Source of the DNA: Obrimoposthia wandeli
Taxonomy: Eukaryota
DNA: 64,000 bases
Reading direction: 5' to 3'
Assembly (NCBI GenBank): GCA_977020255.1
Contig: CDROCS010001089.1
Coordinates: forward strand, 310,001 to 374,000
Part shown: positions 44,648 through 61,808 of the stretch, in pieces
Layout: every line of letters begins with the position of its first letter
How positions within the stretch are numbered: position 1 is the first letter of the stretch
Position numbers and translations under genes: made by a program
Notes under the pieces: model-generated
What the model was told of the DNA's origin: nothing
Seen by the model: only the letters and a program-made list of their open reading frames with translations
Database searches by the model: none

Positions 44648-45760
44648 CTATTTAATACGCCTGTAGTTGTCGGCATTCGATTCAATATAACCCAGTAATT
44701 CAAGCTCAACTAAAAGCGAAGTTAACTCGATTGGATTTAGACAAGTATTAAAAGCAATTTGATTAAAATTACAAAAAGAGAAATCTATACATTCTAACAA
44801 CTTTGATAGATGTACTGGTATAAATGTTGCAAAAGCTTCAGATGCCGTTAAAGCTTCAACAGGTATTTTTACGGCACTAAAACCTCCTAACTCTTGACAG
44901 ATATCATCAATAGATTCAACCAGATTTGCTCCTTGTTTAATCAAGCCATGGCAGCCCTTACTGCCTGCATACTCTATAGGACCCGGTACTGCGAACACTT
45001 CTCTATTTTGCTCTAACGCCATACGCGCGGTAATTAGCGTACCGCTCTTTTCTCTAGCTTCAACAACTAATACACCTAAGGCTAGACCACTTATTATTCT
45101 ATTCCTTCGCGGGAAATTTGCAGGCAATGCTCTCATACCAGGCAAATATTCTGAAACCCAACAACCATGCTCAAGAATGCTATCAGCAAATTGCTGGTGT
45201 TGCTGAGGGTATACTCTGTCTAATCCAGTCCCCATTACTGCGATTGTAGGCTTACCAATATCTAGTACTCCCCTATGGGCTGCTATGTCGACACCTTGGG
45301 CAAGCCCGCTGGTAACAACAAACCCAGAGGCTGCCAATTGTTGAGCAAAAGAATAGGCGCTATTCAGACTAGAAGAACTCGCTTTACGACTGCCCACAAT
45401 GGCTATTTGTGGTTCCGTTAAAACAGAAGCATTGCCTCGATAGAAAATAAAGGCTGGGCTATCAGGGATGTGTTTAAGTATTAATGGAAATTTAGCTTGG
45501 GAAGGGCTTAGCATATGAATGCTATTTTGTTGCATTAAATCGGTTACATGACTAACTTTATCTAATAAAGGACCTTTGTCATCTAAAAAATCAAGAAACT
45601 GTGTGGTATTTAATTTACCTAAAACCCGCTGTAAATCTAGAGCAGGAAAATTGACTTCTATATCAACATTCTCTACCACTAGCTTAATTTTCTTTCTACC
45701 AACATTAGGCAATAGACTCAATGCTAGTAGCAATCTATCAGTTTTGCACAACATACTCAC
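44648..45760 (-). CDS. dprA: DNA-processing protein DprA (Smf)
   Basis: IVGSR, SGLAQGVD, FPRRNRIISGL, VVEAREKSGTLITA, VFAVPG. Confidence 0.95.
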   Translation of the reverse strand: MSMLCKTDRLLLALSLLPNVGRKKIKLVVENVDIEVNFPALDLQRVLGKLNTTQFLDFLDDKGPLLDKVSHVTDLMQQNSIHMLSPSQAKFPLILKHIPDSPAFIFYRGNASVLTEPQIAIVGSRKASSSSLNSAYSFAQQLAASGFVVTSGLAQGVDIAAHRGVLDIGKPTIAVMGTGLDRVYPQQHQQFADSILEHGCWVSEYLPGMRALPANFPRRNRIISGLALGVLVVEAREKSGTLITARMALEQNREVFAVPGPIEYAGSKGCHGLIKQGANLVESIDDICQELGGFSAVKIPVEALTASEAFATFIPVHLSKLLECIDFSFCNFNQIAFNTCLNPIELTSLLVELELLGYIESNADNYRRIK

Positions 45761-45794
45761 CTCTAGGTAATAGCGGTGAGTATTAGCAACATAA

Positions 45795-46829
45795 TTATTT
45801 TACACTTTGTAAATAATCACCGGCAGAAATAAGATCCTTTGCATTAAGCACAATGCCGTAACTTAAATTATTAAAGACACTTACAACCATCAGCTCTCCA
45901 ACAACCTGTTTTCCAATAGTAACCAACTTACTACTACGAGGGTCTTTAACTTGCCTTGGCGCTTTAGCAATATTAAATACATGCCCGGGGTACAAGCCCT
46001 CTGCTTCACCAAGGTTTAGCACAACTGCATCATATGGTGAAATATTTAATGTATCATTTACAGGTGACAATATTTTTCCGTGTATGCCATCAGGCGCAGC
46101 GGCTAAATAGTAAAAAGGCTTCAAGCTAAGCTCTTGGCTCCTAATAAGGAAATCCCCTTTCTTAATTAACCCTTTTGCTCGCATTATCTTTGCTTTAGAG
46201 ACATCACCTTCCATTTCAATAATTTCTAAGGTGCCTACTTTGACAATTTCAGTATTTCTAATATCAAGGCCATCATCTAATCCGTAGTCCTTGCCTGTTC
46301 TATAAATATGGTATTCATTAAAATCAGGATCTAACACCCCTTTTATAAAAACTTCGTCGCCTGTGGAGATTAATTCTCTCAAACCGGCATTAGCAAGTAT
46401 ATAGGGCATTTTGTTAATGCGACTAGCTTCTACAATTCGGTTACTTTCTATGAAACCTTGTATAGCTTCCCTAGGAATTGCTGTTATTGGGGAAAATCGA
46501 TCTGGTGATCTAATTTTAGGTGATAATCTCAAAACGCCATCTTTGCTGGTGCTTAAATAAGGCTTACCATTTTTATACAGCAGATAGATTGTGTCATTTG
46601 GGTAAATCAAGTGGGGGTTTTTAATTTGACTGTTTTGCTCCCAAATAGTAGGCCAAAGCCATGGAGAATTTAAAAATACGCCCGCTATATCCCATAAAGT
46701 ATCACCCTTTTTAACTTTATACAGATCTGGTGAATCTTCTTTTAACAAGTTCTGCGAATTAACTACAGTCGCGAGCATCATCAAAAAAACGAAAGTAACA
46801 GATTTTTTGACTATATGAAATCGGCACAT
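45795..46829 (-). CDS. LysM peptidoglycan-binding protein (TsaP-like)
   Basis: Signal peptide, YKVKKGDTLWDIA..LWPTIW..N.QIKNPHLIYP; usual position between def and dprA. Confidence 0.88.
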   Translation of the reverse strand: MCRFHIVKKSVTFVFLMMLATVVNSQNLLKEDSPDLYKVKKGDTLWDIAGVFLNSPWLWPTIWEQNSQIKNPHLIYPNDTIYLLYKNGKPYLSTSKDGVLRLSPKIRSPDRFSPITAIPREAIQGFIESNRIVEASRINKMPYILANAGLRELISTGDEVFIKGVLDPDFNEYHIYRTGKDYGLDDGLDIRNTEIVKVGTLEIIEMEGDVSKAKIMRAKGLIKKGDFLIRSQELSLKPFYYLAAAPDGIHGKILSPVNDTLNISPYDAVVLNLGEAEGLYPGHVFNIAKAPRQVKDPRSSKLVTIGKQVVGELMVVSVFNNLSYGIVLNAKDLISAGDYLQSVK

Positions 46830-57938: not shown

Positions 57939-57946
57939 CACTTAAA

Positions 57947-57967
57947 TTGGCTCTGTGTTTCAGAGCC
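57947..57967 (+). terminator. Hairpin after glyS
   Basis: GGCTCTG-TGTTT-CAGAGCC about 10 nt after the stop; no clear U-tract. Confidence 0.45.
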
Positions 57968-58975
57968 GATTGAATCTAAAACTCACAATAAACAAGTTTA
58001 GTTAATAATTAAATTTGTTTATTGTGAAAACTTATTTCCAATCTTTAGCCCACCACTCTTTCATTGCGCGTTATAACTTGCCTTTCATATTTGCTTGCTA
58101 GTTCAAAATTCACAACTGATAACACTACAGTAATAACTTAATGTAGATTCTAACTTACAGTATCAATAAAACGCTAAGAAAAACCGACTAGTGCCAACAA
58201 TGAAACTGCATTGGGTTTAGAATACCAACGAGACATAATGCTACGTTTACAATGAATTGAAAACCAGTATGTAAATCACACCAGCTTCCTTAATTAGTAA
58301 TTACTAACATAGCAGAATAGTAACCACTAACATCCCTAAGCAACTGTTTATAATACGTTTAGTAAATAAAAATAAAATACGATGAAATTGCTTATCCACG
58401 TATATAAATGAGCGTTTAATGGAATAAAAGCCAAAACAGAGGAAAAAATATTATTGCGTAACCAAATGATAATTGTAATAAATGGGCTAGTTTCTGGCTC
58501 AGTAAACGAAATAGTGACAAATAATTCATTTCAGAATGACGATTGACCAAAAACATTGTTCAAGAAACATTTAAAAAAATCAATAAAAACTATTTACTAT
58601 CAATAGGTTATAAATCTAAGTTAAGCTAAAAAGAGACTGATTAAATAAAAATAGCTGTTTATAAACAATTAGTTACAAAGCTTGAAACAAAGGCAATATC
58701 GGGGAATTAGTCGTTATCATGAAATAGTCGGTAAGTTTAAAACTCACGATTAACTTCTAATCACCTAAAATTTATCTACAGACCTATACTAAGCAATAGC
58801 TATTTTTACAGAAAATCCATATTTAAATTTTCTATTTGTGTTTTAATTTTGCTGTATTGTTGTTGCTTATAGTTTAACCACAGAACACAATTTGTAACGC
58901 TATCTTAATTAAAGGTTATTGTTGATATCGCCACCGTTGTGTCACCATCGCTGAAATCATATTTAAGGAAATCTT

Positions 58976-61108
58976 ATGAAAAGATCTACGTCGTTTTGTT
59001 TGGGGCTATCAATTCTTTGCGCAATTACAACCTCAAATGCAGCATTCGCTAAAACAACTAATATTGGAGCTGAGCCACAAGTTACTCAACTAACAAGATC
59101 AGCCTGGTTACGCGAGTACTTACCAGAAAACACCCTACTTTATGCAAGAGTCCCTTCTTTATGGACTAGCCTTTCCTACAAGGAAGATAGTTTTAAGTAT
59201 GCTTTAGGCAATAAAAATTACATTGCTACCATCAATAAGATCCAGCAGGCAAGCGTGCAGTGGGTAGAGCAGTCAGAAGAGAAAATAAGACCTTTGTTAG
59301 CACTATTAGCGGGGCAGTTAGATGGCCCTGTAGAAATTGCCGTGATTGCTGCTGGCCCGTCACCAAAAGTGCTGGTATCTGCTAATTTAAACTATCAAAG
59401 TGATCTTCAAGTACAGGCACTGATTAATAGCCTCATTAAAGCAAAAGCGATAAGCCAAGAGTTACAAAAAATGACTGACGGTGCCGGTCTGCTAATGACA
59501 AGCCTGGGCCCTACACCTTATCGTTGGGATAGTGAGCTAAAACGCCTTAATATTCTAATTAACTTTGGTGGTACTGATATAAATACCTTAGATAGCACTT
59601 TTGCCAATTTAAAACAAAATATTGAAAGCCCGATGCTCGTCAATGAAGCGCAAATGGATAGCAGCCAGCAAGGTCTTTACTTGTGGTATAACAACGCAGC
59701 GACCTACCCTTTATATAAAGCAATGATCCCTAAAAGAACCCAGCAACAGATGACTATGTTTGGCGTACCCGAGATGAAATCATTAGCACTTGCTTGGGGC
59801 GTAAGAAACGAAAAAGGCCGTTTAAAGCTAATGTTAGAAACGCCTGATAATGCAGGTTTACGTGCCCTGATTCCCACAAACAATAATCAGCTAGATTTAA
59901 TGACTGCTGCGGACCCAAAGCTGGCAGTGCTTCTTGCGCTGCCCTCTGCTGAACAGTTTTCTAAAATTGAAGCAACACTATTGAAAATGTCGCCAGATAC
60001 CACCTCCTACACACAAGCAAAACAACAAATACAAACAAAACTAGGCTTTAGCATAGAAGAGTTTTTGGCAGCAATAGGACCTGAATTAATTGCAGTATCA
60101 GATAACGCGGGAGATTATTCGGCAATTAAGATTCAAGATAAACAAAAATTTGCAGCAATTATTACAAAGCTACAGCAGCAGCCTGGGGTTTCTGTATTGA
60201 ATAAAGAAGTGGTTGGAGAAAACATAACTTATATGAAGGTTCCAAGCTTATTTAATACTGATGATATCACTGAAAGCACAGATATCCCCTTTTTTATCAA
60301 GGATGTATTAAAAAAAGTAAATACTCACTTATATTGGCATTTTGAAGGCGAATTTCTAATTATTGCTGAGTTACCGCAAGTACTTTTAGATCGAAAAATG
60401 CTGTTAACTGATAAGCTTTTAACTGAATGGCTAACAACCGAACAAAAACAAGATCTAACAGCGAGTACACTAGCGATTACCGGCACTATTCAAGATGCTC
60501 CAAAGCGAATGTACTACATGTACCTAAACCTTTTGCAGATGCTAGCAGATATTACTGGTGCACAGATAGACACTTTCTCACTTCCTTCAGCTAGGCAACT
60601 AGCATTAGCAGAAAACGGCTCATTAGGCTTACAACTGGATTCCAATACCGAAAACTTAAGTCTTGAGTTCACCTTTGAATCAACACCTGCTGACATTTTA
60701 ATGTCTAGTGGGGCCGCTACTTCGCTTGCTGGATTAGGGGTTTTAAGTGCCGTGGCAATACCGGCTTATCAGGACTACATTTTTAAGACCGTCGCTTCCT
60801 CTGCCTTATTTGATGCAGCAACGATTAAAGATAAAGTGGCTGTAAGATATATAGAAAACGGCCGTTTCCCCAACGAAGACGAAGTAGTACGAATGAACGA
60901 TGAGATAATCAGCCAGATAGGAGTATCTAAAAAGTATGAGGGCACTATAGAAGCAAACACTGGTAATATAACCATTCGCTTTAACTCAAAACGTGGCAAG
61001 AAACTACTTTATATCCCAAGTGTCGGCGTGGATAGCATTGACTGGAGTTGCCAATCTAATCTTGCAAGATCTTCAAGACCAGTAGGATGCAAACAAAGCA
61101 TTAAATAG
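58976..61108 (+). CDS. Exported 710-aa protein: large uncharacterised N-terminal domain fused to a C-terminal type IV pilin domain
   Basis: Sec-type signal peptide; C-terminal LAGLGVLSAVAIPAYQDY pilin helix motif, GRFP, and WSC...GCK cysteine pair. Confidence 0.8.
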   Translation: MKRSTSFCLGLSILCAITTSNAAFAKTTNIGAEPQVTQLTRSAWLREYLPENTLLYARVPSLWTSLSYKEDSFKYALGNKNYIATINKIQQASVQWVEQSEEKIRPLLALLAGQLDGPVEIAVIAAGPSPKVLVSANLNYQSDLQVQALINSLIKAKAISQELQKMTDGAGLLMTSLGPTPYRWDSELKRLNILINFGGTDINTLDSTFANLKQNIESPMLVNEAQMDSSQQGLYLWYNNAATYPLYKAMIPKRTQQQMTMFGVPEMKSLALAWGVRNEKGRLKLMLETPDNAGLRALIPTNNNQLDLMTAADPKLAVLLALPSAEQFSKIEATLLKMSPDTTSYTQAKQQIQTKLGFSIEEFLAAIGPELIAVSDNAGDYSAIKIQDKQKFAAIITKLQQQPGVSVLNKEVVGENITYMKVPSLFNTDDITESTDIPFFIKDVLKKVNTHLYWHFEGEFLIIAELPQVLLDRKMLLTDKLLTEWLTTEQKQDLTASTLAITGTIQDAPKRMYYMYLNLLQMLADITGAQIDTFSLPSARQLALAENGSLGLQLDSNTENLSLEFTFESTPADILMSSGAATSLAGLGVLSAVAIPAYQDYIFKTVASSALFDAATIKDKVAVRYIENGRFPNEDEVVRMNDEIISQIGVSKKYEGTIEANTGNITIRFNSKRGKKLLYIPSVGVDSIDWSCQSNLARSSRPVGCKQSIK

Positions 61109-61178
61109 AAAACGAAGGCCTTTGCTTGCTTATATGCATGTACGTAGCTCAGCTACTTTACAAAGGCCTTATTTCAGA

Positions 61179-61808
61179 TTAAAACCAACTACTGTTGCTA
61201 TCCAGTTTAGACTTACAAGAAGCTAACTGCGAAGTATAACTAGCCGCACGTCGTTTTACTTTTTTTGCAACGCCCAGCAGCCAAGGCTTTTTGTTGTAAC
61301 TCTTGCGGTTATAGCCTCCTCTGCCTTCGTGATAAGCTAAGTACTGGCCATAGGCATCCCACTTAGAAACGCCAGTCATTCGTTGGGTGCCTGTGGTGTA
61401 CCAGCCAATGAAGTCAATAGCATCATCAAAGTCATCACGATCCGCTCCGCTGTTGCCTGTCGATTTTTTGTATTCTCCCCAAACTCCATTTAAAGCCTGA
61501 GAGTAACCGTATGCACTGGAAACTCTACCAGCAGGTATTATCCATAAAAAGTATTTATAACCTGGGCGAGCATCATCTTTGAAATTAGATTCTTGCTGCA
61601 TAATCGCCATCATCACTGGTATAGGAGTGCCCCAGCGCTTATTGGCAGCTTTAGCATCTTTATACCAACTATTACTACCCTGAAAAATACTACAGATGTT
61701 AGTCGGGTTAGAAGGCTTATAGTTAGCACAGCCAGCGACTAACACCGTGGTCAGTATCATCAGACTGGTAAATTTAAAATCGCTTTTTTGGCTAGGCTTT
61801 GTACCCAT
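61179..61808 (-). CDS. SLT-like lytic transglycosylase lipoprotein
   Basis: Lipobox-like LVAGC, MMAIMQQESNF (catalytic Glu), SSAYGYSQAL, YLAYHEG. Confidence 0.78.
   Translation of the reverse strand: MGTKPSQKSDFKFTSLMILTTVLVAGCANYKPSNPTNICSIFQGSNSWYKDAKAANKRWGTPIPVMMAIMQQESNFKDDARPGYKYFLWIIPAGRVSSAYGYSQALNGVWGEYKKSTGNSGADRDDFDDAIDFIGWYTTGTQRMTGVSKWDAYGQYLAYHEGRGGYNRKSYNKKPWLLGVAKKVKRRAASYTSQLASCKSKLDSNSSWF

Follow-up and report, generated by a model that had tools for sequence, protein, structure and literature searches.

A type IVa pilin body without its N-terminus is conserved behind a large exported domain

The window analysed here, a stretch of 64,000 nucleotides from the genome assembly of Obrimoposthia wandeli (GCA_977020255.1, contig CDROCS010001089.1, positions 310,001 to 374,000 of the forward strand), contains a gene whose product ends in the body of a type IV pilin. 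The gene belongs to a marine bacterium and has counterparts in hundreds of species; it is a single intact open reading frame (ORF) of 710 codons and a stop, with an ATG start in the ORF listing. Its product consists of four parts, namely a Sec signal, an alpha/beta domain of ~530 amino acids (aa; hereafter the N-domain), a Gly/Ser-rich linker and a type IVa pilin that begins at about residue 10 of a mature pilin (Table 1). The C-terminal module was shown to be a type IVa pilin that lacks exactly those parts by which a pilin is processed by PilD, resides in the membrane and polymerises, and selection has long maintained this pilin body without an N-terminus behind the large exported domain. With a probability of about 0.4, we read the protein as a periplasmic, membrane-peripheral and non-polymerising pilin mimic, in which the remnant of the pilin helix alpha1 would dock a hydrophobe- or membrane-binding domain akin to the lipoprotein TP0453 and to DUF3352 proteins.

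The C-terminal module was recognised by sequence profiles and by structure alike. The Pfam family PF00114 (Pilin) matches residues 607–706 with 33.7 bits against a cut-off of 22 (E 7.8e-8), and it also matches 62 of 69 diverse members of the protein family described below; a local hidden Markov model of the pilin part matches 161 of the 179 family proteins compared. A profile of 29 family members aligns with Neisseria PilE from mature residue 7 to the C-terminus with an E-value of 6e-22. The AlphaFold 2 (AF2) model of the 710-aa protein, with a mean predicted local distance difference test score (pLDDT) of 81.4 and a predicted template-modelling score of 0.70, has a 48-residue helix (residues 581–628) followed by a four-stranded sheet. 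This model matches gonococcal pilin 1ay2 (Z 10.6, 130 residues, root-mean-square deviation (rmsd) 3.7, 28% identity) and PAK pilin 1oqw (Z 10.7). A preliminary description of the gene, made from its sequence, had proposed that a pilin fold is reused here as a fused C-terminal domain, and would have given this up had the C-terminus failed to model as a pilin; the profile and structural matches bear the proposal out. The motifs that it had listed also lie where it had placed them, with the helix beginning at residue 584 (nucleotide 60725), GRFP at residues 629–632, and W-S-C...G-C formed by W690/C692 and C705. The Cys pair falls within the last 45 residues in 141 of 164 head-bearing family members; with the type IVa major pilins (PilA/PilE, PF00114) the module shares the alpha-beta roll of the head as well as the disulfide loop at the end.

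What defines a type IV pilin is its N-terminus, with the leader, Phe1, Glu5 and the membrane-spanning alpha1N, and it is here that the fusion protein departs from the type. In a positional profile of 155 members anchored on an invariant proline, which corresponds to pilin Pro22, the family consensus at positions 10–27 is the type IVa consensus (G14 94%, A18 95%, P22 100%, Y24 94%, D26 81%, Y27 89%), including the Q25-D26-Y27 run of the major pilins. Four of these residues, G14, P22, Y24 and Y27, serve filament packing in pilus structures, and they are kept at 89–100% though the members are only ~27% identical overall. Upstream of position 10 the likeness ends. Positions 3–9 are rich in Gly, Ser, Ala and Thr across the 155 members, and position 5 is G in 40%, Q in 17% and N in 13%, being acidic in just 7%. 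The major pilins carry a class III leader, Gly-1, Phe1 and Glu5; the fusion protein has none of these and has a Gly/Ser linker at positions 1–9 instead. Its pilin module comes C-terminal after ~570 residues and is exported by a Sec or lipoprotein signal, and its helix is too weakly hydrophobic to span a membrane. The prepilin cleavage motif G|F-T-L-I-E, already reported as missing in the preliminary description, occurs at the junction neither in the 710-aa protein nor in any of the 179 family proteins compared, and no N_methyl match was found in the 69 diverse members. Among the marks of a type IV pilin the protein therefore has the PF00114 head and the pilin fold, and has neither the class III signal nor the membrane-spanning alpha1N. 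Since leader, Phe1 and Glu5 have been lost, the module would undergo no cut by PilD, take no pilin-like seat in the inner membrane and gain no entry into a filament, since filaments bury the N-terminal end of alpha1.

So odd an architecture could arise as an artefact of assembly or annotation, or as a decaying fusion produced by a lost stop or by a silent pilS-like cassette that came to lie in frame by chance. The oddity is the only point that speaks for such an origin, to which we assign next to no probability. The window sits in a 1.35-Gb assembly of 6912 contigs with many bacterial contigs among them, and two further contigs carry full-length homologues of 708 and 707 aa that have the same architecture and are 54% and 39% identical to the 710-aa protein; a fourth copy is partial and lies at the start of a short contig. 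A word-indexed protein search returned 32 relatives, nearly all of 700–730 aa with PF00114, from Oceanospirillaceae and Pseudomonadales metagenome-assembled genomes, an Osedax symbiont and the isolate AS21. When a profile of the N-domain only was compared with 1.84 billion representatives, 424 clusters were found at E ≤ 1e-3 and 309 at E ≤ 1e-30, each cluster being a representative at 50% identity and most being 700–750 aa long. Named hosts include Neptuniibacter (complete genomes), several Kangiella species, Leucothrix, Cocleimonas and Cardiobacteriaceae, and the family was present in 15 of 301 evenly sampled gammaproteobacterial species, mostly in single copy. None of the homologues examined is split into two genes, which the preliminary description had named as a finding that would undo the fusion. 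It had further considered a stop or start lost near position 60700; contigs assembled independently from the source sample span the junction (60486–60938) without indels. The fusion or assembly artefact is thus refuted by the extra copies, the 424 clusters, the complete genomes of isolates, the low ratio of non-synonymous to synonymous substitution (dN/dS) in both parts and the contigs that cross the junction; nor do the modules group with the resident pilA.

Compared with the closest ortholog (locus L015), dN/dS is 0.10 in the N-domain, 0.16 in the linker and helix and 0.12 in the head, so that both modules are under purifying selection. The age of the fusion can be approached through the ordinary pilins of the same genomes. 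In five named genomes, exactly one fusion gene per genome accompanies the ordinary pilin genes, and in a quick maximum-likelihood tree of weak resolution eight of nine canonical pilins form one clade apart from the fusion modules. The fusion modules in this poorly resolved tree track the relatedness of their N-domains, and this, together with the separate position of the ordinary pilins, fits an old fusion better than a resident pilA captured time and again. Recent capture of a resident pilA or of a silent cassette was rejected on the same weakly resolved tree, in which the canonical pilins group apart. Silent pilin cassettes, such as Neisseria pilS and the invertible pilin segments of Moraxella, serve as recombination donors; they are not expressed themselves and are very similar to the pilin that is. 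Like the fusion module, they are pilin coding sequence without the leader and the first residues; unlike them, the fusion module lies in frame within a conserved ORF, has a dN/dS of 0.12 and is not closest to the resident pilA.

Several of these copies coexist in the assembly. Several bacteria contributed contigs to it, and among seven of these (C1089, C2858, C546, C6375, C2469, C2834 and C2724) at least four different family copies and two canonical nadC-linked pilA genes indicate several related Oceanospirillaceae-like strains. Contig C2724 is Tenacibaculum-like and codes for a protein with DUF3352 and MORN repeats. In Logan contigs of the source sample, many single-base variants and zero indels were seen along the gene (window positions 58900–61200), and closely related strains therefore coexist in the sample.

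Table 1. Parts of the fusion gene and its upstream region, in window coordinates.
Feature	Position	Strand	Basis and remarks
Whole ORF	58976..61108	+	710 aa; dN/dS ~0.1 in both modules
Sec (signal peptidase I type) signal peptide, residues 1-25	58976..59050	+	Read from sequence; pLDDT <50 for residues 1-32
N-domain, residues ~40-572	59093..60691	+	AF2 pLDDT mostly 80-94; TP0453-like alpha/beta fold, remotely DUF3352-like
Linker, residues 573-583, in place of pilin positions 1-9	60692..60724	+	155-member positional profile; pLDDT <50
Pilin alpha1 helix, residues 584-628, ~mature positions 10-53	60725..60859	+	Family consensus; AF2 helix 581-628
Pilin globular head, residues 629-710, with terminal Cys692-Cys705 pair	60860..61105	+	PF00114, PDB profile match, structural matches
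AT-rich non-coding stretch between glyS and the gene, presumed promoter/leader	57939..58975	.	Composition; longest ORF ≤46 aa

The larger part of the protein is less easily placed. No Pfam or NCBIfam family matches the first 580 residues, and no PDB sequence matches the N-domain, for which AF2 gives a confident alpha/beta model. Among solved structures, the Treponema pallidum lipoprotein TP0453 alone matches it (Foldseek E 1.3e-5, probability 1.00), with a VIA Z of 11.2 over 216 aligned residues for 3k8i and a Z of 9.3 for 3k8g; the next matches reach a Z of at most 5.4, and those to START/RseB-like sub-domains are weak (Z 3–4.7). Both proteins share an alpha/beta/alpha fold in which 201–216 of ~250 residues can be aligned (Z 9.3–11.2), and ~42% of the fusion family, like TP0453, are lipoproteins. 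However, the two show no detectable sequence similarity, the rmsd is 5–6 Å, the N-domain of the fusion is twice as large, and the 710-aa member has an A-F-A|K signal peptidase I site and no lipobox. TP0453 reportedly inserts into membranes by means of amphipathic helices.

The preliminary description had suggested that the N-domain may be DUF3352-like, a suggestion that survives as a distant resemblance and fails as a family assignment. PF11832 (DUF3352) gives no match at E ≤ 1 for the 710-aa protein and matches 0 of the 69 diverse members at E ≤ 0.01, whereas a real DUF3352 protein in the same assembly, used as a control, scores 52 bits. In the ESM Atlas, on the other hand, the nearest clusters to the N-domain are DUF3352 clusters, by features (0.95) as well as by shape (TM 0.51), and hhalign of the family against a flavobacterial DUF3352 alignment returns a probability of 44.7% and an E-value of 2.3e-4 over 174 co-linear columns. 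A distant kinship of the N-domain to DUF3352 is probable. The two are similar in size (~540 aa) and in their extracytoplasmic setting; the Tenacibaculum and related DUF3352 proteins looked at differ in that they end in MORN repeats and not in a pilin. One Atlas cluster of DUF3352 proteins combines FecR, zf-HC2 and DUF3352, an anti-sigma layout in which the DUF3352 part lies outside the cytoplasm. The N-domain probably serves to bind hydrophobic ligands or a membrane.

The route of export can be read from the N-terminus, which has the features of a Sec signal (K-R, a hydrophobic core and A-F-A|K, with cleavage predicted after residue 25) within an intact ORF, much as the preliminary description had it. 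All inspected members begin with a Sec-type signal or a lipobox, the latter in 69 of 164 head-bearing members (~42%); the residue that follows the lipid-modified Cys in these 69 is Ser in 28, Asp in 12 and Gly in 11. Whether the chain would then stop in the inner membrane depends on the junction helix, the hydrophobicity of which was expressed on two simple scales, KD19 and the summed 19-residue Hessa score. Over 164 members the median KD19 is 1.80 and the median Hessa sum +3.0, with no member at or below zero, compared to a KD19 of 2.94 and a Hessa sum of -2.7 for nine canonical pilins of the same genomes. At the junction, a Gly-rich stretch leads into a hydrophobic run of ~15 residues. A membrane-spanning helix, doubted in the preliminary description, thus appears unlikely. 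Its other suggestion, that the helix packs inside the protein, fared worse: residues 574–597 have a pLDDT below 50 in the AF2 model, as does the equivalent stretch in that of a second family member, and the models lend no support to a helix buried in the N-domain. Given the short and weak hydrophobic run, the Gly-rich stretch before it and the conserved Cys pair, the whole protein probably crosses the inner membrane, with both domains periplasmic. The pilin-type Cys pair, being conserved, would also point to an oxidising compartment.

These values bear on a further possibility, in which the junction helix is a true stop-transfer anchor that leaves the N-domain in the periplasm and the pilin head in the cytoplasm. 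A KD19 of 1.6–1.9 is borderline for such an anchor, and some headless members, for example P0055, end in a helix and a basic tail. Against this, the Hessa sum is positive in 164 of 164 members, the hydrophobic run, which comes after a Gly-rich stretch, is only ~15 residues long, a terminal Cys pair of the pilin type would serve no purpose in the cytoplasm and yet is conserved, and the tails of the headless members are mostly acidic. Taken together, this arrangement seems very improbable. Hardly more credit can be given to a special first or last filament subunit, a priming, capping or anchoring adaptor that carries the N-domain along. An alpha1 consensus from position 10 and a nearly complete head would suit such a subunit, and the flexible linker could exit at the bottom of the filament. 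Nevertheless, there is no Phe1, no Glu5 and no membrane-spanning alpha1N for the machine to extract, the 530-aa domain sits on the very end of alpha1 that filaments bury, Sec or Lol would deliver the protein to the wrong side for a pilin-type topology, and no minor-pilin or pilY1 gene is linked. A role as terminal subunit is distinctly unlikely.

Relatives with a different C-terminus indicate which parts of the architecture can vary. Three proteins of ~750 aa (P0140, P0149 and P0153) have, instead of the type IVa head, a C-terminal ~190 aa with the H-X9-DG hallmarks of prepilin-type proteins, again with no cleavage site. No Pfam or PDB family matches this C-terminus, TIGR04294 reaches just E 0.057, and a word search finds one relative. 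AF2 models the C-terminus of P0149 with low confidence (pLDDT 35–60); its Atlas model and features place it near H-X9-DG/SBP_bac_10 and N_methyl clusters (TM 0.55–0.62, features 0.90). Atlas clusters of Planctomycetota with SBP_bac_10 or T2SSG match the whole query in shape, among them an SBP_bac_10 cluster of 845 aa (TM 0.60 over 587 residues) and a T2SSG cluster of 752 aa. Such proteins of the Planctomycetota/Verrucomicrobiota type, which would link an N-domain of similar kind to H-X9-DG (SBP_bac_10) or T2SSG pseudopilin-like modules, share the overall shape of the fusion protein, being matched by shape only, and differ in that their pilin-like module is of another class. Other members have no head at all: proteins of ~600–640 aa (P0054, P0055, P0056, P0127, P0166 and others) stop after the hydrophobic helix and a short tail, which is mostly acidic and in P0055 basic. 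In P0054 and P0056 the genes are complete and no pilin gene follows downstream. A single member, P0047 (885 aa), has ~170 residues of ankyrin repeats ahead of the N-domain.

For the preferred reading of a periplasmic pilin mimic, these observations can be arranged into a sequence of events. Sec would carry the protein over the inner membrane, and the ~42% of head-bearing relatives with a lipobox would also be lipidated through the lipoprotein pathway. A flexible Gly/Ser linker joins the N-domain to a pilin body without leader, Phe1 and Glu5, and the remaining 15-residue hydrophobic part of alpha1 would be left exposed. The exposed alpha1 could then dock peripherally on the periplasmic face of a membrane or, alternatively, helix-to-helix on pilins resident in the membrane, the pilus machinery or other copies of the protein, and docking would bring the N-domain to the same place. 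While the architecture, the export signals, the fold, the loss of the features for processing and polymerisation, the conservation and the purifying selection are shown, what we infer is docking through alpha1, a periplasmic place for both domains and the binding of hydrophobes or membrane by the N-domain. A pilin-type interaction is favoured because the residues of alpha1 that pack filaments are highly conserved and because the head has been swapped for that of another pilin-like class.

In the preliminary description, a pilus-priming or anchoring adaptor, an adhesin and a decoy had been put forward as possible functions. A more specific proposal, related to the pilin mimic, is that of a new class of accessory factors of type IV filaments, in which alpha1 and the head dock on the pool of membrane pilins or on the assembly machine. 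The N-domain would then shield or extract pilin helices, cap assembly, or couple pilus dynamics to envelope lipids, and the same logic would recur with the pseudopilin-type modules of Planctomycetota and Verrucomicrobiota. We regard this version as unlikely, though less so than a place within the filament.

Some findings weigh against the pilin mimic, and they are for the most part those of genomic context. Neighbour clustering of 27 loci found no partner conserved across lineages, the further contexts being unrelated to one another, and linkage to pil, type II secretion or other genes was seen in none of the lineages examined, so that the gene is a stand-alone one. The preliminary description had noted the lack of adjacent pil genes in the window, and this holds for every lineage examined. 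Co-occurrence with type IV pili says nothing either: PilM is present in 15 of 15 family-positive genomes, but also in 264–274 of the 301 overall (p ~0.15), and is thus near-universal in the sample. The headless members retain only the hydrophobic helix and a short tail, for which reason the helix may be nothing but an anchor. Finally, the likeness to TP0453 is one of fold only.

The same findings nourish the principal competitor, which denies the pilin part any connection with pili: alpha1 would be a hydrophobic anchor or packing element, the head a lectin- or adhesin-like binding module, and the N-domain would have a function in envelope lipids. Besides the missing synteny with pil genes and the existence of headless variants, this view can draw on the weak START/RseB-like matches within the N-domain (Z 3–4.7) and on the lipid genes around the family gene in one distant lineage. 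In that lineage (P0030, 31% identity; L013:7085-10825), an LpxR-like gene, a gene for an unknown protein of 277 aa and mlaC form a tight same-strand row with the family gene, and the row sits inside a mevalonate/hopanoid cluster with HpnH-like and GT2 genes, a context that hints at a lipid-trafficking role for the N-domain. The LpxR-like and mlaC neighbours count in favour of the pilin mimic as well. A plain anchor, however, would not need filament-packing residues, and yet G14, P22, Y24 and Y27 are conserved at 89–100%. Further, the replacement of the head by another pilin-like class suggests selection on the pilin-type module as such. A use unconnected with pili is accordingly a possible but somewhat doubtful explanation.

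Around the gene itself, little is shared beyond the closest relatives. In this lineage the order is trkH, a lipid A acyltransferase gene, ytoQ, glyQ, glyS, a spacer of ~1 kb and the fusion gene. Downstream, a convergent gene for an SLT_4 lytic transglycosylase lipoprotein of 209 aa (window 61179-61808, minus strand) is kept in only four related loci. The spacer (57939-58975) has a GC content of 28–30% and no ORF longer than 46 aa, and none of its ORFs is conserved. Six of eight syntenic relatives have a spacer of 0.9–1.05 kb with 29–33% GC, the sequence of which is barely conserved. No Rfam match was found in the spacer, and scans for promoters and terminators performed at chance level; it may be a long regulatory region or leader. 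A search for expression of the gene found no RNA run containing this stretch of DNA. Directly after the stop codon of glyS lies a hairpin of 45 nucleotides with a 20-bp stem (window 57983-58027), which could be the terminator of glyS or a binding site.

Elsewhere in the window, dprA adjoins a gene for a 344-aa LysM protein, TsaP-like by position only (44648-46829, minus strand), both of which had been remarked upon in the preliminary description. The two genes are divergent from three ORFs that correspond by position only to def, fmt and rsmB, and from ORFs in the positions of trkA and trkH, of which Pfam confirms trkH alone. The region looks like a housekeeping block without a functional link to the fusion gene.

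The modules of the fusion protein are known or resemble known ones; neither DUF3352 nor a C-terminal fusion of a type IV pilin is the subject of any paper found in a literature search. Relatives are entered in databases as "pilin" or PilA/PilE, and genome surveys should leave the fusion genes that bear the label "pilin" out of their counts of major pilins. We know of no role for the DUF3352/TP0453-like fold outside Treponema, and the family offers a first functional handle on it. With Neptuniibacter and Kangiella, both cultured and available as complete genomes, the family can be put to the test. If contact of the module with pilins or the pilus machine persists, the protein would belong to pilus biology as a component so far overlooked; if it makes no such contact, the family shows that a pilin fold can serve another purpose and keep its alpha1 signature.

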